Source: Bugula neritina (lineage: Eukaryota; Animalia; Bryozoa). From it: a stretch of DNA of 35,908 nucleotides. Below the pieces are notes generated by a model that saw only the letters and a list, made by a program, of their open reading frames with translations, ran no database searches and was not told the origin of the DNA. Shown piece by piece: positions 190-35,908 of this stretch. Position numbers and translations under genes: made by a program. The stretch is from contig CAXIUT010000092.1 in NCBI GenBank assembly GCA_964035545.1, positions 35,258 through 71,165 of the forward strand. Direction: 5' to 3'. How positions within the stretch are numbered: the first letter of the stretch is position 1; every line of letters starts with the position of its first letter.

Positions 190-665
190 ATGGAGAATTC
201 TTCATTTGACATAAAAAATATCATCCATGAAAGGTTTTATCCTATTTTCAGAGCATATGATCTCGATGGCAACTCTACAATCGATTTGAGTGAGTTCAAA
301 AGTATGCTTGCTTAAAATTTGAACATATCCGAGTAAAGCATTTCAGAAGATCAACTGAACTGGCACTTTAAAAGAGTCGATGAAAATAGTGATGGAAAAA
401 TATCTTTTGAAGAATATGTAATCGTAATCTAAGATAGTTTGCTTACTTCTTTAAGGACAGATTGGCACATTCTAAGAAAAAAGCAGGTAAAGAAGATGAT
501 CTCATTGATATCGATGAATTTAGAAAACTGATGGCTTCAACTTTTGGCATATTGAACCTGAGTTAATAAATGATTCAACATCATTTCAGAAAGATTGACA
601 CGAATGGATCTGGAAAGATATCCACTAAGTAGTTTTCATTATTTGTCGATAAATACAATCCTTGA
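190..665 (+). CDS. Calmodulin-like EF-hand calcium-binding protein (~151 aa)
   Basis: With UAR=Glu the EF loops read DLDGNSTIDLSE, DENSDGKISFEE and DTNGSGKISTK(TAG=E)F. One 20-nt intron at 418-437; TGA stop. Confidence 0.9.
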
Positions 666-700: not shown

Positions 701-3518
701 TCAATCAATTTATACTACTTTAGGTGGTTATTATTTTGGTTCTTAATTATTTCTAAACCTTTTAGTTGGTTATTGTTTATAATCTGAAGGTCTTCTACTC
801 ATGGCATCTTATTTAGATTATTTGCCTATCCGTTAGATATATTTTTAGACAAATTTGAGTCGATGGTAGATCTATTCTAGCAGATCTTATCTCACGAAAT
901 CCTACATTAATAATGTTATACAGTTTTGAAGATATTGACTGTCCAATTGTCAATGATTTATATGAATCCAAACATCATGAGGGTTTGTTGTACGTGTTTG
1001 GGTTTATTTTTATATAATTTACTTATTTATCCCAAATCGAATTTATATCTTCTGATTAACCTGTTTTTATGATAAAATAAAACTCCATTTTGAAAGTTTA
1101 AACTTGTTGTCTTGCGATTCAACTATCTTCCTCTTCCATTGACCTTATTATAATAAACCTATATAACTCTAGTAATACCTCAACTATATTACAATGTCCT
1201 AGATCAAGTGCAGGTTCTATATCTATAAGTTTCTCACTTTTTACTAGCGTATCAATCTTTTAAAAGATTTATGAGTTATTGATTTAAATTGTTTTGTGAT
1301 CACTGATAACTAGTGATATTTTGATGTCATCTGATTTGAGATAAAGCAAAGAAAGATAGCTTTTGAGGGAGATGTCTATTGAATCAAGTAGTACACTTTA
1401 ATCATTATTGTCAATATGTTTTTTTTAGCAGCAAAAGATATCGTTATATCTAGCACTTTATTTGAGTTATAGTTATATTTATCCTCTTTAATTTTATATT
1501 TATTTCAAACCTGTAATGAATATGAAATTCCCAACAGACTATTTTTTTTAATTTACTATCTTTAAATATGGTTTATATTGTTCTTCGATGTATTTTTTGG
1601 CTGTTTCCATGAGGGGATCGATTAGTGATCCATTTTAGATGATATAGTAGTGGCATTGATAGGTTATATGTGTTTACTATGTTGATGTTTTTTAGATGAG
1701 GAAGACTCTTCTATATTACTGCATGGGTCCATATCTGCTGATTAGTAACATTTTATCTCCTATTCTTAGTGATCCTAACTTAATGTTTCTACTGTATTGA
1801 ATTTTATCTTGTTTTCTTTTTTGAAGGTTTTATTTTGCTATTTTCTTTCTTTTCTTTAACTACTTCTACAACTATTTATCTCTCGCTTATTTCTACTTTA
1901 TCTATTTCAACTATTTTGCCTCTTTTGTCTCTTTTATCTACTTCATCTATTTGTTTAGAATGTTGGTGTGGTGGTGAACTGGACTTTCTGGCCTCATCTT
2001 ATTCTAGTCCTATTTTTATTATTCTTATAAATGATCGATATTTTATTCAACATAGGTGTGAATGGACTTCATGTCGTTAAGGAAGTCTTGATTGCTGTTC
2101 CAAAGCTTATGAGTTGAACCTGTATCTTCGAAAAGACAATATTTTTATTTGAAAGTATGACCGAAAATAACTTTAGTCTATTTTGAATTAAGAATTAAGG
2201 CGTTATCTAGAAGTAATCCAAAAGCACTATAGACATAGTTGAGTTTATCTTCTAGTATTTATGGGAAAATAGTAAATTAGTCAGTTTTGTTTTTTACTAG
2301 ACTGTGAATCTACTATTTACATGACCAACATTAACTCTAAAGCAACTAGTAAGCTTACATCTTTCTTGTCTTCATACTTGAAAGAGTTGTATCGATCTAT
2401 TTCAACTACATATTCATGACAAGTAAACCTGAACTAGCTTATTAAATCAAAGAGCTGCCCTAATCTTTCATATCCTTTGAATCTTCGATACTTTGTTCTT
2501 TTAAGTCATATTGTCCAAAAATAAAACATTTATCTGCACTGTAATTGATCGAACAGCCTATATTTGGGAGCTTATTTGGTGATTATTTGAGAGTTATCCA
2601 TAGCCAGTTCGGAGAAGCAATGGTATACAGCCAAAATCCAGGTTAAACAGTATTTTATTCCTTGAGATTGCTGCCTCCCCAAAGAACAAGATACTTGTCA
2701 CCACAGTTGACCAAATTTGCTACTCTTTATTGAGGTGTTGAGTTGGTGATGACAGTTTTGACCCAGAGATCAGGTCTATTGCTCATAGGCCGATTGATAA
2801 GTTTGATTTGGTAAAAATCATCCAAACATTGATAATTCATACCTTCTTCTGAGATAGTTGCTTGTTCTCCACCAAAGAAATAGATATTATCGCCATGGGA
2901 GCAGATACCAGGTCGGATTCTACATGGTATTTTCATCTAGTAGCTAGGTTATTAGACTTGCATCCATAGTTTGTTGTCTATTTTGTAGATGTGGAAGTCG
3001 TTGAATATTTATTTTCCATTTCTGCCTCCATAGAGGATGATTGAACTTCTTTGGTGGACTGTCATGACTGGATGCTATCTCGGAGAGGGAGAGTATCCTT
3101 TAAGTTACTGTCTTTTCCAGTTATAGGACTAGAGGTTGAGACACCATAATCCTCCGATATATGTGTTTTATTGATAGTTTTTTCCTCCAAAAACGTACAT
3201 CATGTTATTGAATAGAGCAGTTCCATGAGCGCATATATACCCGAACGAGTTGTTGCTGAGGAAGTGTGTTTAGATTTTGTTCCAAACTTTAGATGAAAAA
3301 CTGTATCTATAAAGAGCTGTTTGTTCTGCTTAATGGTTTTATGGCAAAATTGATAATTTGCCTCCATAAATGTAAAGAGAAGATTTATGGATAACAGCCG
3401 AGTGAAATCTTCTTTGTGCTGGTTCTTATTGATTTCTTTTTGGAATGCTTTTGTTGCAGTATCCGAGTGTGATGGGAGGAGTTGCGAGTACAATATCTTT
3501 TGTTATTTGCTTTTACAT
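701..3518 (-). CDS. MORC: Kelch-repeat + MORC-family GHKL/S5 protein (~925 aa), degenerate ATPase
   Basis: N-terminal kelch blades (RRFHSAV..LYIYGG, MYVFGG, IILYGG, IYFFGG, LVLWGG). MORC motifs follow: YSAFGLLLDNA, FEDTG, QYSRNIKLGSLRIGDKMLLISR, GNFIFITGL, IDISLKSYLSLLYLK, NGVLFYHKNRLIRRY, MFGFIEI..FKTDF. Introns at 1159-1178 and 902-921 (20 nt each) give a continuous frame. Confidence 0.85.
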
Positions 3519-3549: not shown

Positions 3550-5301
3550 TCAGTAGAGGCCGTTCAAAGAAGTGCGTACTTAGCACAGAATGACTAAGAC
3601 CCACTCGACATAGGGACAGTTATTGAGATCATCCAACTATATACATTTAAGAAGCAAATTCGCTATTATTTTTACGAGTTCTCCTCCTTTGCAGAGGAAG
3701 TATTCAGTTTAGACAGTCCACATTTTCATCCAGTCTTACTTGTTCCACTCTTCTTGCCTGTGAATGTTGTTTTAGAAGAAGGGAAATTTTTACATAAGAA
3801 TACGATAGAGACAAACTCCCAGACTCATGACATCACATTTTTAGTGTTGGAGATCATCTGGTTTGAGGAACCGATAGGGGAAAGAGATCAGCTATTCTGG
3901 ATTCATGACAATATGTGTGATTTTACCTTTTTATTCTTATTTGGTGGCATCTGGCCATTAGCTGATTTTAAAAGCTCTGTAGAACCCAGTAATTTTAACT
4001 TCTAGGCCTTTAGTAATCATTAAATTGTCTAGTTCTATAAAATACCCTATTCTAAGTTTATGCATATACTGCAGAAGTGAACATATTTGTGCCATGATAT
4101 GCAATTTAGTTGATAGACTCATAGTTCTACTATTTTTTCTCATAAAAGTTAATAAAGGAATTTCTTACTAGTATAAAGTAAACATATGATTTTATAGTTA
4201 TTTAGGCAGATTGCTAGGTACAAAATGTAGTAGCATATTAGGATGTTTTTTATCTATTATTTTTAATATTTATATCTAGTGACTATATTATATTTCATCC
4301 ATTTCTTATCCTCTTGCTAATATTAACTTATTCTAGAAGTGTAGTTAGTATAGATTTTTTTATTTTATGTAGTTGATGATGGTGATGGGAGTGGTATCGA
4401 TGGTTGGTGTTGTAAACTATTTTTAAATGCCCTAGTTGAGATGTTTTGCAAATTATATTTAGTTTTTTTACTACAGTTATATGTAGTCTTTAATAAAGAG
4501 TGAACCTTTATCTTTTTGTTTCTTTTATATCTAGAGATGTTTGCGATTGAATTTTGGTTCATATAAAAGAGCCAGTTATAGTACTTTTGGATTGGTAATT
4601 AGCTTTTTTTATTTATTGAGGAATATTTTTTTGAAGTATGATCTGTTCTTATGAGCAGTGGCTATATCTGATCTGATTTTATAGAATCTTGAAGTTGTGA
4701 TAAGAGATTTTATCTTGTCTAATAACTTCTCAACTTTCATATATCTGGGAAATCCTGGATTTATCTTTATAGCTGATTTGAGATAAGGTTCATTGGCTTC
4801 TTTCCCAAATATCATCTACAGCATAGTGTTGAATATCATTTCTGACTATTCTCCCAAAATGTGACACAAATCTGTTACTAATTATCTGAATTTATGTTCA
4901 TCTTCTAGTACTGTCTCGTCTGTCAGAAAGGAAAGAGTCACCATAACTTATCCATTCGTTGGGTTGGTCTTTATGAAAATATTCCGGAAAGAACGTTAGT
5001 TATAGCGGAAGGCGAAACGAGTTAGTTCGATGCGTTGGTATTGCCACTGTCCATGGACTATGTGTTATTGATCGAGTAGCCAGCAGATGAGATTAATTTG
5101 TCCTATCTTGAAATCTCCTTCAACTTGGCAGATACTAGAGTAGACTCTGTTTATCTTTTTGCAATTAAGAAGACAGCTAAAGGTTTTTTCTTTGAGATCT
5201 ACTTTGGAGACGTAGTTGTGGTCGTAGAGAGTGAACTTTTATAGTTTTTTGAAGATAGATTTATCTTATTTTGGGTAAGCTAGAGTTTCAATCCACTCCA
5301 T
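3550..5301 (-). CDS. Protein with C-terminal degenerate protein kinase domain (pseudokinase, 583 aa)
   Basis: Intronless ORF under UAR=Glu. Kinase-like segments: EIEILK..KHPNML, KLHIMAQICSLLQYMH, NLMITKGLEVKITGF, KCDVMSLGVCLYRILMEKFPF. The HRD and DFG motifs are absent. Confidence 0.75.
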
Positions 5302-5350
5302 GCCTTTATTCAAAGATATTCACAATTATTATGATAATAAACAATGACTA

Positions 5351-6389
5351 TCATTGAGTATATTTAGCCTACAGGTTCTCAATGCACTTCACAACACTGA
5401 AATCTTCCTTAGAACCATCTTCTTTGACTACGAACAGACATCTTGTATCCATGTACTGAGGATGCACATCCACTACAAAGTGTTTGAGGTTTTTAAGCTT
5501 TTCTTCTGATTTGTTGTGGTAGCCTAGCAATTCTTCTACTTGATCTGCTTCACTTTTCTTTAGTGGGACATTGTTTGGATTTCTGCAGAGAATATTTTTG
5601 AACTAACTTTTCAATTTGTTAATGTCATCGTAGTGCCTTCCTGCAAAATCAAATTCAATTTTTTTATTTTTGAGTTGTATTCTTTTTTCTTCTTTAGCTC
5701 TTTTGTTGAAATCTTTTTTCAAATTTTGAATGATACCGTTATAGTGGTGTCCATGCTTTTCCCAGAACTAGCTTAATTGTTCTGGAGTGGATTTATTGAC
5801 AATAAGAGTGGCTTAACCTACTTTGAGTCCATTTTGAGTTAGAGAAGTAAGATCTTCTTCTTTGTGGTTCTTTTTGTTGACAGCAAAATTACCTTATGTT
5901 TTATTGTATCTGACATATGGAGAGTGGATGTTGTGATTTTTCAACAGTGCTTCTTGGATGTATCGGAAGGGCACTGTTTGTTCTTTTTCAATCGATAAGG
6001 TGTATATCATTCTATATTGATGTTAAAGTACACTTAAAGGTTGTCGTATGGGTTGGGAGCTTGTTCATGTTTTCCTTAGCTTTTGACTTTTTTGATTGGT
6101 TTGAACTAAGGGAGATTTTATAGTTTTTTAATTCTGAGCATAGTTTTATCTGGATTGAGTTCAATAGATTAACAATTTTAGACTGCATCAGCTATTTGTT
6201 TAATAGAATTAATTCCTAGTTTTTTAACTTTGTTGCATTTGAGAAAGTTATCCAACTTGACGAAGTGTTATCTAGATGTTTGAGGATATACTTGTTGGAT
6301 GCGACTTCTTTGTAGAAGAACTAATCATTTTGTAGGTTATCTTCACTGAGATAGTATTAAATTTGTCTGACTAGGTTAGGGTTTGCCAT
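5351..6389 (-). CDS. La-motif protein with RRM2-like segment and C-terminal DUF3223/DCL domain (Tetrahymena Mlp1-like, ~332 aa)
   Basis: La motif LVRQIEYYLSEDNLQNDEFF...VKLDNFLKCNKVKKL. C-terminal HPQYMDTRCLFVVKEDGSKEDFSVVKCI matches DUF3223. Two 20-nt introns restore the frame. Confidence 0.85.
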
Positions 6390-6538: not shown

Positions 6539-7081
6539 TCATAGATCATCTTATGTTATTGTTATTCTACTCATTTTCTTACTTAGATTCTTTACTTCTT
6601 TCTATATTTTTGACTGAGCCTACTTTTTGATAAAATTGGGTTTTAACTCCTTTATTGATAACTTTTACACATCTTGTCTTAACTATTCAACTCTAGCTTT
6701 CTATAAAACTGTCTCTAAAATGCTATCGTCATCATAGTTGTCAGCAAGTTGATAGAATCCATGTTGTTCTACTTGATGGGTGTTATAGAAGTTGACTTGG
6801 TTTTGATCTAGTTGACTGATAAGATCATCTAATTTTGTTTTGAATTTATCACTGGAGTTGTTGAAGGATGATTGCATGTCGATGGGTTGTGAGTGTTTTT
6901 GTAGTTGTTCTAATTGTATGATTTAGTTTTAGTCTTCAATTCTGAAGTGGTAGTCGTGGATGAAGGGAAAGTCTTTTGTAGTTTAGTATTATTCTGATAG
7001 ATATCCTGAGTTGTTTTTGAGACTTATTTTAGTTCTAATGGAATCGTCGAAATCAGTTTCGTCCATTTGCATGCCGAACAT
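6539..7081 (-). CDS. Hypothetical protein (180 aa)
   Basis: ATG-to-TGA ORF under UAR=Glu (MFGMQMDETDFDD...RITITEDDL); no recognised domain. Confidence 0.7.
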
Positions 7082-7230
7082 TATTCTATTATAAATATTA
7101 TTATCGTATTTAAGAGTTTAAATATGATTATTGAAACAGTATCTATCAGATTAAATACATCTATATATCACTAAATAATTTATGCGTTTCAGATTAATAG
7201 AGGTGATTTTGAGCTATTTTATTATCATAA

Positions 7231-7965
7231 ATGTAGTCGATTCCTGGCATACAGGGAAGTACTCTTCGTTTTTAATAAATAACCTTCATGGAAGAATCAC
7301 AACCAGAAACACCAACTCATCCTTACAACTATATGCGACTCAATAAACATAATTAAAATAATTAGCCTTCACCTTGGAATACATATAAATAACGTCACAA
7401 ACAAGAATGCTTTGAACCAGTCACCAGATGCCATCATTCTTTCTTTACTAAAACTTCACACAAAGATCATTATCTTCATTCCAAACAATAACTTTTCAGA
7501 AAGAAACAATAAGGACATTAACTCTTTAAAATAAACAATAATTTTGTCCAATTCAAAGTCAATAAAACATCCAAAGGAAACAGAAATAAACTAAAAACTC
7601 ATCACTAGCATACCACTATTGATACAAGACAAATACCCACGCCTAATAAATATCATCTTCTCTCACAATAAAAACATGTTAAAGAAGGCTCATTGGAAAA
7701 AAATCCTAAAATAATCTTTTTATAAAGAAAATTCAGACTTAAATCTCAAGTGTCTACCAGACAAAATAATAGTAGAAGAAATAATATACATTATGAAGGC
7801 AAAAGAAAAGAGGACCTTAGCAGTTTGACTACAGTATAAAATGCATAGAGCACAATAGAGATATGCAGTAGTCCTAAAAAGGAAGAAAAAGGAATGAAGA
7901 TTGATTTATTGACTCATAAGTATGAGATGAGTCTTCAGCTGAGGAGAAAACCTATAATAGAATGA
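7231..7965 (+). CDS. Hypothetical protein (244 aa)
   Basis: Open frame MESIPGIQGST...LRRKPIIE-TGA under UAR=Glu; alternative start at 7288. Confidence 0.65.
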
Positions 7966-8001: not shown

Positions 8002-8594
8002 ATGGGATGTAATTCGAGTAAGCAATATGTCTTACTTATATTGGTCGGTTCAGCTCGTAGAGAATCAGTAAACTGTGCTCTTGTAGAGGAAATGCAACGT
8101 CTAATTATTGATAAAAATTTACATCTTAAACTAATCATTCCTGATCTTGAAAAAATACCCATCTTTTCCACAGATGTCTAAAATCAAATCTGTAAATAGT
8201 ATTTTTTATTTCAGTTTTACCTAACGAAATTAAAAGTATAAGAGAGAAAGCTGATCAAGCTGATGCTGTTCTTTTCGTTACTCCATAAATGAATAGCGTT
8301 TCGCCTTTGATACTAAATGCTTTTGTTTGGCTTTCTCGTTCTTATTCTGATAAAGGATCTCCTCTGAATTCAAAGAAATCAGGAGTAATTAGTGCCTCAT
8401 ACTTAAGCTAAAATCAAATAGTAGACTGTATATAACTGGGAAAACATCTTGATATGAACTTCTACAAAGAAGCTTTTCATCTATTTTTAGGGAATAAAGT
8501 TACAGATGAGTCAGGACAATTGACTTCTGCATACGAAAAAGGAAGACTTGCAGATTGGTATAGATAATTTTTAACTTTTGTTATTTAAAAGTGA
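8002..8594 (+). CDS. NADPH-dependent FMN reductase (flavodoxin-like, ChrR/SsuE family) with N-terminal MGC acylation motif
   Basis: ILVGSARRESVN phosphate-binding loop and ADAVLFVTP(TAA=E)MN...ILNAFVWLSR. 23-nt intron at 8192-8214. Confidence 0.88.
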
Positions 8595-8658
8595 ATTATG
8601 ATTTTTATATCTTTTTTGAGTTCAATATTTAGATAGAAAATGACATAAGTAATAAAAA

Positions 8659-11600
8659 TCAAGACATCTATGGTTCTACGAGCATATTAATGACTGCTTC
8701 GATGAGGGATCTACCAGATTAAAGAGGATGTCCTACTCCTTCGACTCTAAAGGCTCTTTCTTTGACTTTAATCATTATTTTTTATAGAGAATCTTTCCAG
8801 AGATAGCAAATAGTAAAAGTATTGCTTTACTATTCATATGAACCATAAGGAAATAGATATTATAGATATTTTTTACCTTTTTTGAGTAGATCTTAGCAAG
8901 AACTATAAAGAGGAGTGATGTAGTGTGTTGTTCTATTTCTACTATTACTTTGACTTAATTCTGAATCTATTTTAAGAGGAATGGCAATATTGTAGGGAGT
9001 GAGAGGTATTTAAACAGAAGAATTGAATATTTTATTTTATAGGCCTTATTAGAAACATACTTTGACTTAAAGTTAGCTGGGAATAAATATATTTTAATGG
9101 TTTTTCGTTCCTTATACTTATGTTTTAAATTTCATCTGTTTTCCTACAAATACTTTATCGAATTATCTTTTGATATTTTATGAATAAATAATAGAATTGT
9201 TTTTCATATTGATATCTAGAGAATCACAATGATGTTTTAGAGTTAGATATAAAGTGATTATTTTATCTTTATAACTATAACCTATCTAAAACCATTCATT
9301 TTTTACTATTAAACATCTATTCGATACCATATTCTTCTTTGTTAATTTATCACATCCTTTTATATTTTATAATTTTAACTTTATTACTGAAGGATCATAT
9401 TCTTTTAAACTCATACTATTGTTCTTTATTGAACTTTATTTTAATTAACGAGCTAAAACTTTAGCTGAACTATGTGATAATAATAAAGGTTATACCTATT
9501 TTCTTTTTAACATTCCACGGATTATCTAATTTTATCTTTTTAAAAATGTTGGATCTTATTTAGTTAATTATCTTTTCTTTATTTTTAATATTTTTTGTTA
9601 ATTCTATTTTTATATTAATTGTTTTTGGACATTTTGTGTCTATTCTTTTAGTTTTCCAAGTTGATTTTATAATTATCTCATTTTCTTTAAATTAGGGATT
9701 TATACTGTCCTTTCAGCTATTCTTAATTTACGTAAAGAATGATTTAAGGATAAAGATGAAGCCTTTTCTCTTTTACTCTTACCTTTCTTTCTGAAAAGAG
9801 AGCTGAAATTGCTAGGAACTCGACTAGAATCACTTCCTGATACTGATTGTACTTCTGGTTCAACTGAAACTTCTTTGATGTAGCTGCTTTGATTGGAAAG
9901 AGGATGATCAAGATAGATAGATCTGATTTTATGTTATTATTATGATTTATATGGAGTTCTAAATTACTAGCTTCTAGGATTAGCCTTTGTATTTTATGTT
10001 TTTTTGTCATTTCCTTTTGATGATGGACTGATAGGTGATTTTATTTTATGCATGATTAAAGGTTATTGAATTTCTTAAGGAGTTAAATTAGGCTAAGATT
10101 ATCTTTCTAGTTTATTTTTGGGAGAAAGGCTCATACTTAAATCTTTGAGAATGTTTGATTAATCAAGAGTATCAGCTAATTTGAATCCAAATTTAGGTTT
10201 TTTGATTGTGGCAGGTAATTTAGCATTTTTATCTATTCCATATTAAAGAACAGCTTGACTATCTTACTTTTTTGTAGCTATACTATCTTAAAATTGTATT
10301 TATGATTCACTATTTCTACTTATTTATATTTTTTTAGTTTTATTTTTATTTGAAGATTTATTGAGAGATTATTTATCAAAATGAAGGAAAGAACCTGAAT
10401 CATCTTGACTATTTTTATTTTTACCCAAATAGATACTTTATACTTTATTATCTTTTTGACTGAATTGAGAAGAGTTAAGAGATATTGATTATTGAGGAGA
10501 TTATAGTGGAGTTTTTCTTGGCGTGCTATTCTTAGCATTAACTTTTTGTGCTGATAATTAATATACCTGCTTAAATGATTATTAAAATATCTATTTTCCT
10601 TTAAAACTGCTATCTTTATTCTTTATTTTGTTTGAAGTTGTTTTTACTATTGATGGCATTTTAGGATTTTATCTGTGATAGTATATATTCTAGTGGACTT
10701 TTTCATTTAGAGAGAGACTAGTTCCTGATTACTATGATTTTAGGTGGGCAGTGTTTCTGATTTAGCTGATATAACTCGAAGAATCAGCAAATTTTTTATG
10801 AGGAGGTCCTTTTATCTGATTTGATTATGTAGATCCATTGATTTATTCTCTATTTCTAACTGAATTCAAAAGACTTCTACTGAATGAGTTCAAAGATGAA
10901 TCACTTTTTTATGAAATAGTCAATGAATCTAAGACATTTTAATAAGCTATTTTATCTCTTTTTTGTCTTTTCAATCGAGATTCTGCTTCCTTTAGAAGTT
11001 TTATTGAATAACAATCGACATCTTGGTTAATGTCTATGATAAAAGACCTTTTGAGATCATTGCTACTTTTCATTTTATTAAGTTTATTGTTAAATCTAAA
11101 TAATGATATATTTTACAATTGTATCTATTGTTGATATTGTAGTTTCATGGGTTTTTTAACCCAACTTACCAAATCATAAGAATATTAATATATTTGAGTA
11201 GACAATCCTGACAATTTAGTTTTATCATACCATATAAAATAGTAATCTATCAACTTTTATTTATTTTATGGACTTAATGGATTCTTTATCTCTTGTAGAA
11301 CCATGTTATTTTTGAAATCAATAGGAATAATAAATTATAAAATAGCAGGCAGACATTTACTATTTATTGTTTCAATGGCTTATATTTAGGCTAAAGAAAA
11401 AATACTATTCAAAAACTAACAAGTATCTACCACTCTACTAGGTGAAAGGAAACAATAAGTTCGGTATACAATGGCTGTAATGCAATAACTATATTATCTT
11501 ATTTATACCTTTAAGCCATCTAAATGAGACTTAAAAGAAGAAAAGATGAATCTTGATATTTGGTTTGTTCTGTCAAACATTGTTAAACCTTATCACTGAG

Positions 11601-35834: not shown

Positions 35835-35908
35835 TGGGGTTGGGGTTGGGGTTGGGGTTGGGGTTGGGGTTGGGGTTGGGGTTGGGGTTGGGGTTGGGGT
35901 TGGGTGGG
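35835..35908 (+). repeat. Right telomere (TTGGGG)n
   Basis: G4T2 repeats run to the window end. Confidence 0.98.

Follow-up and report, generated by a model that had tools for sequence, protein, structure and literature searches.

The 35.9-kb window analyzed here (contig CAXIUT010000092.1, positions 35,258 to 71,165; "the window" means this whole stretch of 35,908 nucleotides (nt)) contains a ciliate gene whose product is probably a MORC-derived pseudo-ATPase with a Kelch propeller fused to it. The predicted protein has, in order, a six-blade Kelch propeller, a linker with a CxxC motif, the N-terminal half of a GHKL ATPase domain, an insert rich in Glu and Lys (E/K-rich), an unrecognised segment, a MORC-type S5 domain and a basic tail. 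We infer that ATP turnover has been lost in this protein. It is named here MORC-like or MORC-derived, and not a member of the MORC ATPases, because neither a CW finger nor the catalytic residues were found and shared descent is only plausible. The gene and its predicted domains, with amino acid (aa) positions, are the following.

701-3518, minus strand: whole Kelch-MORC-like gene, ATG at 3518, TGA at 703-701, 925 aa; collinear orthologues on contigs L006, L008, L010, L011 and L016
2484-3428, minus strand, aa 31-345: Kelch beta-propeller with Pfam matches, its six blades counted in the window protein
2265-2483, minus strand, aa 346-418: linker, poorly conserved (26% identity to L006), with an invariant CxxC (C397, C400) and no family match
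2028-2264, minus strand, aa 419-497: GHKL N-terminal half with motif I (AFGLLLDN) and motif II (DTGST); sub-threshold HATPase_c_3 matches in relatives
1803-2027, minus strand, aa 498-572: E/K-rich insert, about 78 aa long, that separates motif II from the putative G2 box and carries the basic cluster KKRKK
1401-1802, minus strand, aa 573-706: putative remainder of the GHKL fold, with IQYSRNIKLGSLRIGD, NFIFITGL and FCCEK; 53% identity to L006
839-1400, minus strand, aa 707-880: MORC-type S5 (transducer-like) domain, spanning both introns; Morc6_S5 matches
704-838, minus strand, aa 881-925: C-terminal tail with a conserved basic P-[KRT]-K-[KR]-[FVT]-[KR] and a hydrophobic-acidic end, ..IxID

The domain assignments come mainly from Pfam scans, in which stop-free pieces of the window and of its relatives were compared with all 24,736 models. 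The Kelch models match the window pieces weakly, the orthologue pieces at an E-value (E) of 1e-11 and an unbroken 355-aa open reading frame (ORF) of L016 at 1.7e-33, which is above the cut-off. For the S5 domain, the unbroken L016 piece matches Morc6_S5 (PF17942) over profile positions 2-87 (E 3.5e-4, 21.1 bits, where the cut-off is 26.2), two window pieces match it at profile positions 71-87 (E 0.011) and 2-22 (E 0.16), and pieces of L006, L010, L011 and P0026 match it with E-values of 0.016-0.15. Seven pieces, which come from five members, have Morc6_S5 as their only or top family and are collinear with the profile; one L008 piece matches the related SMCHD1_S5. The sole PDB match of the window S5 piece is MORC3 (5ix1, residues 308-323), across YHKNRLI. 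For the GHKL domain, profile positions 10-43 of HATPase_c_3 (PF13589) are matched in three relatives, P0019, P0022 and P0023 (E 0.037, 0.059 and 0.0056, respectively). For the L016 fragment of the GHKL N-terminal half that the ESM Atlas contains, PF13589 accounts for 24 of the 30 nearest clusters (score 0.96), and the Atlas's own low-confidence model of this fragment has HATPase_c families as its structure neighbours. The Atlas gave no usable match with the L006 piece of the GHKL N-terminal half or the L008 piece of the C-terminal half, and when the pieces around motif I, motif II, the lid and the start of S5 were compared with PDB sequences, as were two small profiles, the result was nothing or repeat artefacts (WD40 designs and a helical repeat design).

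Thus, an S5 domain directly after a GHKL domain, as expected of a MORC relative, is supported statistically, although below the curated cut-off, and the sub-threshold GHKL and S5 matches are consistent with each other in family, order and position. By its position, length, conserved motifs and motif spacing, the segment at aa 573-706 would be the rest of the Bergerat fold. A single reading frame runs from the Kelch region to motifs I and II in the window and in L004, L005, L006, L008, L010, L011, L014 and L016. A first-pass annotation of the window had proposed Kelch blades fused in a single frame to a MORC-like GHKL and S5 module, which these results bear out; of the Pfam families it had named for a check, Kelch, Morc6_S5 and HATPase_c_3 are all matched in the family, although the MORC and GHKL scores stay below the cut-offs.

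Two cysteine motifs also deserve mention. The CxxC at aa 397-400 (CWSC, about 2319-2330) is invariant in all full-length members, and a CC pair at aa 695-696 (FCCEK, about 1431-1436), near the GHKL/S5 junction, is invariant except in the divergent L018. Together these four cysteines could form a candidate zinc site, which no family model matches.

The ATPase module has lost the residues that hydrolysis would require. With the residue roles taken from the MORC2 structure paper (PMC5811534), the correspondence is as follows.

MORC2 Glu35, general base: window Leu435 (2214-2216, minus strand); Leu in 12 of 12 family members seen
MORC2 Asn39, Mg-binding: window Asn439 (2202-2204, minus strand); kept in the family
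MORC2 Asp68, adenine-binding: window Asp465; kept in the family
MORC2 Gly70, G1 box: window Gly467; kept in the family
MORC2 Gly72, G1 box: window Thr469; never Gly (11 of 11)
MORC2 Gly98, Gly101 and Gly103, G2 box: window Ile573, Ser576 and Asn578; no Gly in 8 of 8, by inferred alignment
MORC2 Tyr100, lid: window Tyr575; Tyr or Phe in the family
MORC2 Lys105, alpha-phosphate: window Lys580; kept in the family

Motif I reads SAFGLLLDNA (aa 431-440), with Leu435 four residues ahead of Asn439, so the replacement of the catalytic Glu by Leu reported in the first-pass annotation is confirmed. The same is true of motif II, for which it had given DTGS in place of DNGxG: the window has DTGST (aa 465-469, 2112-2126), the relatives have DNG-x-[TSCPA], and the second Gly is absent throughout. 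The putative lid, IQYSRNIK in the window (QYSRNIK at aa 574-580), lies opposite G98-x-Y100-G101-N102-G103-x-K105 of MORC2. Here the annotation was right about the QYSRN sequence and the long E/K-rich insertion ahead of it, but the equivalence to GxYGNG is putative and drawn here from spacing. The G1 and G2 boxes are 103 residues apart, compared to 25 in MORC2, and the 78-aa stretch ahead of QYSRNIK holds 19 Glu and 20 Lys. This extra part includes a helix-like TYVEENID.LEE and an E/K/R-rich stretch with the basic cluster, both of them conserved, as well as a low-complexity stretch that is variable; among the orthologues, the center of the insert varies in length and both of its ends are conserved. 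MORC2 also has a transducer-domain lysine, Lys427, that contacts the gamma-phosphate (PMC5811534). In the family, a Lys is conserved in NIFKT (aa 858), a part of the S5 profile to which no tool alignment extends.

Because the general-base Glu and the glycine-box residues are lost, hydrolysis is very unlikely. The term pseudo-ATPase in the first-pass annotation is therefore apt in that the hydrolysis residues are missing and this state is conserved under purifying selection (see below), but the residues expected to contact a nucleotide are retained. The module may be dead for hydrolysis only and could still bind nucleotide.

The gene belongs to a conserved family. A search with the longest stop-free Kelch piece gave only five fragments; a metagenome scan and word searches gave further contigs. 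Full-length orthologues are present on L006, L008, L010, L011 and L016 (913-921 aa where modelled, 42-55% identity) and partial ones on L004, L005, L012, L014 and L018. The family has at least 25 sequence clusters, all from unannotated environmental DNA and without a precomputed Pfam domain. A Kelch alignment had no match in a bacterial/archaeal genome set or in viral contigs. The collinear orthologues, at 42-55% identity over their full length, place the gene and its motifs far beyond chance.

Strain data indicate that the module is still under constraint. About 1.5% of bases differ between the window and two contig sets that carry the same species label. Among the best-supported 40 of 56 differences, 24 in the coding sequence are synonymous and 5 are nonsynonymous (ratio of nonsynonymous to synonymous polymorphism per site, pN/pS, 0.05, P = 1e-12); for the ATPase module alone, the same 40 of 56 include 16 synonymous and 3 nonsynonymous changes (P = 4e-9). 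Since synonymous changes far outnumber nonsynonymous ones, purifying selection is acting on the module. Synonymous divergence between the window and L006 has reached saturation (pS about 0.9), and the amino acid identity of the two is 54% in the Kelch region, 59% in the GHKL N-terminal half, 53% in the C-terminal half and 71% in S5. The degenerate ATPase module is as constrained as the Kelch propeller.

The only stop codon of the gene is TGA, and TAA or TAG occurs in frame 81 times. In the orthologue alignment, these codons face Glu in 160 cases, Asp in 65 and Gln in 13; reading TAA and TAG as Gln (translation table 6) was consequently rejected. Strain polymorphisms occur at window position 733 (codon 916), which is TAA in the window and GAA in one strain, and at position 2178 (codon 447), where TAG and TAA alternate. 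These polymorphisms are direct population-level support for TAA and TAG as Glu. With alignment partners that are mostly Glu and these strain variants, the UAR = Glu code (UAA and UAG; table 30), with which the first-pass annotation had proposed to translate the gene, is correct. TAR codons are read as Glu at every family locus examined in detail, and conserved Glu columns of the alignment have TAR codons in several species simultaneously. The use of these codons is uneven among the relatives: the window gene has 81 in 925 codons (third-position GC 0.33), and the GC-rich L016 orthologue has six. The relatives with few TAA and TAG codons make the family searchable by standard tools.

The gene model has three exons and two introns.

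1179-3518, minus strand: exon 1
1159-1178, minus strand: intron 1, 20 nt, GTA..TAG, phase 0, between codons 780 and 781; removal restores ...NIVEVYYNKV...
922-1158, minus strand: exon 2
902-921, minus strand: intron 2, 20 nt, GTA..TAG, phase 0, directly after ...NIFKT
704-901, minus strand: exon 3

Both introns are supported because L006, which does not have intron 1, encodes the same residues uninterrupted, because the position of intron 2 is shared by the orthologues and because strain variants are concentrated in the introns. A 20-nt intron is present at the position of intron 2 in all five long orthologues (L006, L008, L010, L011 and L016). Among the variants listed, one lies inside intron 1, at 1174, and seven fall within the 20 nt of intron 2. 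The span of 701-3518 given in the first-pass annotation matches this 925-aa model exactly, and every motif that it quoted is present (SLKSYLSLLYLK, GVLFYHKNRLI, KTDF, SAFGLLLDNA, DTGS and QYSRN), KTDF only after the removal of intron 2. The annotation had also described the gene as invisible in the standard-code ORF track, and indeed it is, because a single same-strand ORF of at least 70 aa lies inside it.

All of the introns found in the gene family are exactly 20 nt long and begin with GT and end with AG, mostly as GTA...TAG. Members with 42-55% protein identity share the position of the intron that follows ...FKT/FKN, and the remaining introns vary by species. Examples from two orthologues are:

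L006, 9836-9855, 10127-10146 and 11992-12011: introns of 20 nt each
L016, 5649-5668: intron of 20 nt

Several observations weigh against a MORC-derived pseudo-ATPase. Every GHKL and S5 family match is below the curated Pfam cut-off, the window's own GHKL pieces match no Pfam model, and the GHKL C-terminal half (aa 573-706) was unrecognised by Pfam, PDB and the Atlas. AlphaFold2 gave an all-helical model of an 85-aa fragment of the GHKL N-terminal half that is not credible (predicted local distance difference test score, pLDDT, 62) and a pLDDT of 38 for a 128-aa S5 fragment. The alignment of QYSRN with GxYGNG was not made by a tool but was drawn from the spacing and from two residues that are conserved. 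Residues that would be expected to stay if nucleotide were still bound are retained, namely the Mg-binding Asn, the adenine-binding Asp, the alpha-phosphate Lys and the NIFKT Lys. The strain differences analyzed were the best-supported 40 of 56, and the four sequencing runs that cover the locus are DNA-like, consisting of unspliced contigs without joints, none of them recorded as RNA. Finally, nuclear localization and a scaffold function are what we infer from the sequence.

The main rival to a pseudo-ATPase that has given up its nucleotide is a module that is hydrolysis-dead but still binds one, forming a long-lived or constitutive N-terminal dimer, that is, a clamp locked shut. In MORC2, dimerization is driven by ATP binding, and a lid mutant with low ATPase activity dimerizes constitutively (PMC5811534), which would fit such a clamp, as would the fact that the equivalents of Asn39, Asp68, Gly70 and Lys105 and the Lys of the NIFKT S5 loop are invariant in the family. 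Yet the G2 box has none of its three glycines, the G1 box lacks its second one and about 100 residues stand in place of the lid, and we consider a locked clamp rather unlikely. An active ATPase with a non-canonical general base is much less probable still. A 2026 study argues for a second acidic residue in an early hydrolysis step in MutL and GyrB (PMC13614785), and the strong conservation of the module would be compatible with an enzyme; however, all 12 members have the conserved Leu at the general-base position, the glycine boxes have been lost and no canonical family model is matched at threshold.

It is also unlikely, to a degree between these two, that the module is not derived from MORC at all, in which case a Kelch region would have been fused, in a separate event, to a GHL-type module of another kind (MutL-like or SMCHD1-like) and the apicomplexan likeness would be convergent. 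HATPase_c_3 is common to MutL, SMCHD1 and MORC, one piece matches SMCHD1_S5 rather than Morc6_S5, none of 5,142 word-sharing candidates is a canonical MORC at E <= 10, and a phyletic survey from 2008 names MORCs in apicomplexans and not in ciliates (PMC2292703). Against these points, Morc6_S5 is the recurrent best family, with seven matches, MORC3 is the sole PDB match, over YHKNRLI, and an hhalign comparison of the family's ATPase-module alignment with the E. coli MutL N-terminal domain gave a probability of 0.5%, i.e., no detectable relationship. A decaying pseudogene or an annotation artefact would agree with the finding of no RNA among the runs at the locus, but the 925 codons form an unbroken frame with a pN/pS of about 0.05, and full-length syntenic orthologues persist despite saturated synonymous divergence. 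The selection data refute this explanation for practical purposes.

If the protein is a MORC-derived pseudo-ATPase, we predict that it is a nuclear scaffold without enzymatic activity, in which the Kelch propeller would bring in partner proteins and the GHKL-S5 body would be a fixed platform for dimerization or DNA binding. By analogy with the coiled-coil insertion of MORC2, the charged segment of about 100 residues that replaces the 25-residue ATP lid might contact nucleic acid. Two basic clusters that resemble nuclear localization signals, KKRKK in the insert and P-[KRT]-K-[KR]-[FVT]-[KR] in the tail, might direct nuclear import. A bolder and doubtful proposal is that the Kelch-MORC protein is older than the split between ciliates and apicomplexans and that, in UAR = Glu ciliates, it became a multi-copy set of nucleotide-independent or ATP-locked chromatin clamps, with a charged arm of about 100 residues for a lid and the CxxC...CC cysteines perhaps replacing the CW finger. 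If this were true, it would be a naturally occurring MORC pseudo-enzyme.

The surroundings of the gene are conserved as well. C4A2 repeats are present at 1-75 and G4T2 repeats at about 35836-35908; because these repeats are at both ends, the window is a complete linear, telomere-to-telomere somatic chromosome with many genes. The neighbours of the Kelch-MORC-like gene are:

190-665, plus strand: EF-hand gene, convergent and downstream, a conserved neighbour
3553-5319, minus strand: upstream gene of 589 aa, family not recognised; one weak, sub-threshold protein-kinase match, on the L016 orthologue
5354-6064, minus strand: DUF3223 gene, upstream, a conserved neighbour

The order of these three genes is the same in L016 (130-3071 and 5866-6362) and partly so in L006, L008, L010 and L011. 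Since the neighbouring genes are conserved, the family loci are orthologues in a syntenic block. The GC-rich L016 contig also contains a TP6A_N (Spo11/TopoVIA-type) fragment at 6795-7490 on the minus strand and PNK3P plus AAA_33 genes (polynucleotide kinase-phosphatase-like) at 8044-9204 on the plus strand; the compared region of the window had no match to the TP6A_N, PNK3P and AAA_33 genes.

The final profile search returned 29 matches, nearly all of them family fragments. One match, P0040, on L019 (JGI Ga0315906_10277929, 342-725), was rejected as a family member, as it is a different S5-like fragment on a contig without a GHKL part. It reads ...GVLLYQNNRLISRF... in a frame without TAA or TAG, comes from an AT-rich organism and has a weak match to the Pfam family DNA_mis_repair. 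It is probably a MORC/MutL-like protein of another protist.

MORC proteins are ATP-driven chromatin compactors, by a mechanism that is debated, and they are master silencers in apicomplexan parasites. A natural, conserved MORC-like protein without the hydrolysis machinery would make it possible to test which of the MORC functions depend on ATP turnover, and it would extend the Kelch-MORC architecture beyond Apicomplexa. Ciliates carry out large-scale DNA silencing and elimination, so a MORC-like scaffold is a reasonable candidate for a role in these processes. The ancestral alveolate silencing scaffold of the first-pass annotation, with its part in macronuclear chromatin or developmental silencing, is a hypothesis of this kind. 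The reassigned genetic code and the decay of the motifs conceal the whole family, and the relatives that were recovered are metagenomic fragments without Pfam annotation. No paper on a MORC in a ciliate was found in the literature searched, and the 2008 survey names apicomplexans and heteroloboseans, and not ciliates, among the organisms with MORCs (PMC2292703). The protein appears to be a previously unreported non-enzymatic relative of the MORCs.

Apicomplexan MORC (TgMORC and PfMORC, PF3D7_1468100) is among the closest known systems. It is likewise an alveolate protein with Kelch repeats N-terminal to a MORC-type GHKL in one polypeptide, and descent from an apicomplexan Kelch-MORC is plausible. 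The apicomplexan proteins are much longer than the 925-aa ciliate protein. In them, the Kelch repeats are followed by a HATPase domain (PMC7820235), they have a CW-type zinc finger (10.1101/2023.09.11.557253) and they are described as catalytically active ATPases (10.1101/2023.09.11.557253, PMC7820235). The family described here, in contrast, has neither the general-base Glu nor the glycine boxes and has an E/K-rich insert of about 78 aa in the lid. The protein ends 45 residues after S5, and Pfam scans of the pieces that cover it had no match to a CW-type zinc finger. The description "apicomplexan-style" in the first-pass annotation thus holds for the order of Kelch and HATPase only.

As in human MORC2 and MORC3, S5 follows GHKL, and the S5 motif GxxxYHKNRLI corresponds to residues 308-323 of MORC3 (5ix1). 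Unlike these two proteins, the window protein has a Kelch propeller at its N-terminus and no CW domain or C-terminal coiled coil. The equivalents of MORC2 Asn39, Asp68, Gly70, Tyr100 and Lys105 are kept in the window, whereas Glu35 is changed to Leu, Gly72 to Thr and Gly98/Gly101/Gly103 to Ile/Ser/Asn, with a box distance of 103 rather than 25. MORC2 also provides a precedent for the E/K/R-rich insert as a possible nucleic-acid arm, namely its CC1, a charged helical insertion within the ATPase module. CC1 is located further C-terminal in the module, whereas the insert described here sits in the ATP-lid region of the GHKL domain. The CC1 coiled-coil insertion is functionally critical and is tied to DNA binding (PMC5811534).

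As for the loss of catalysis itself, there is a parallel in a different branch of the GHKL proteins, which we would place beside the MORC comparison. The meiotic TopoVIB-like proteins form an unrelated branch with a different partner, Spo11, and have neither Kelch nor a MORC-type S5. Their GHKL domain is also degenerate, and in them, the Bergerat fold has been retained in a structural or regulatory role after the ATP-hydrolysis motifs were lost.

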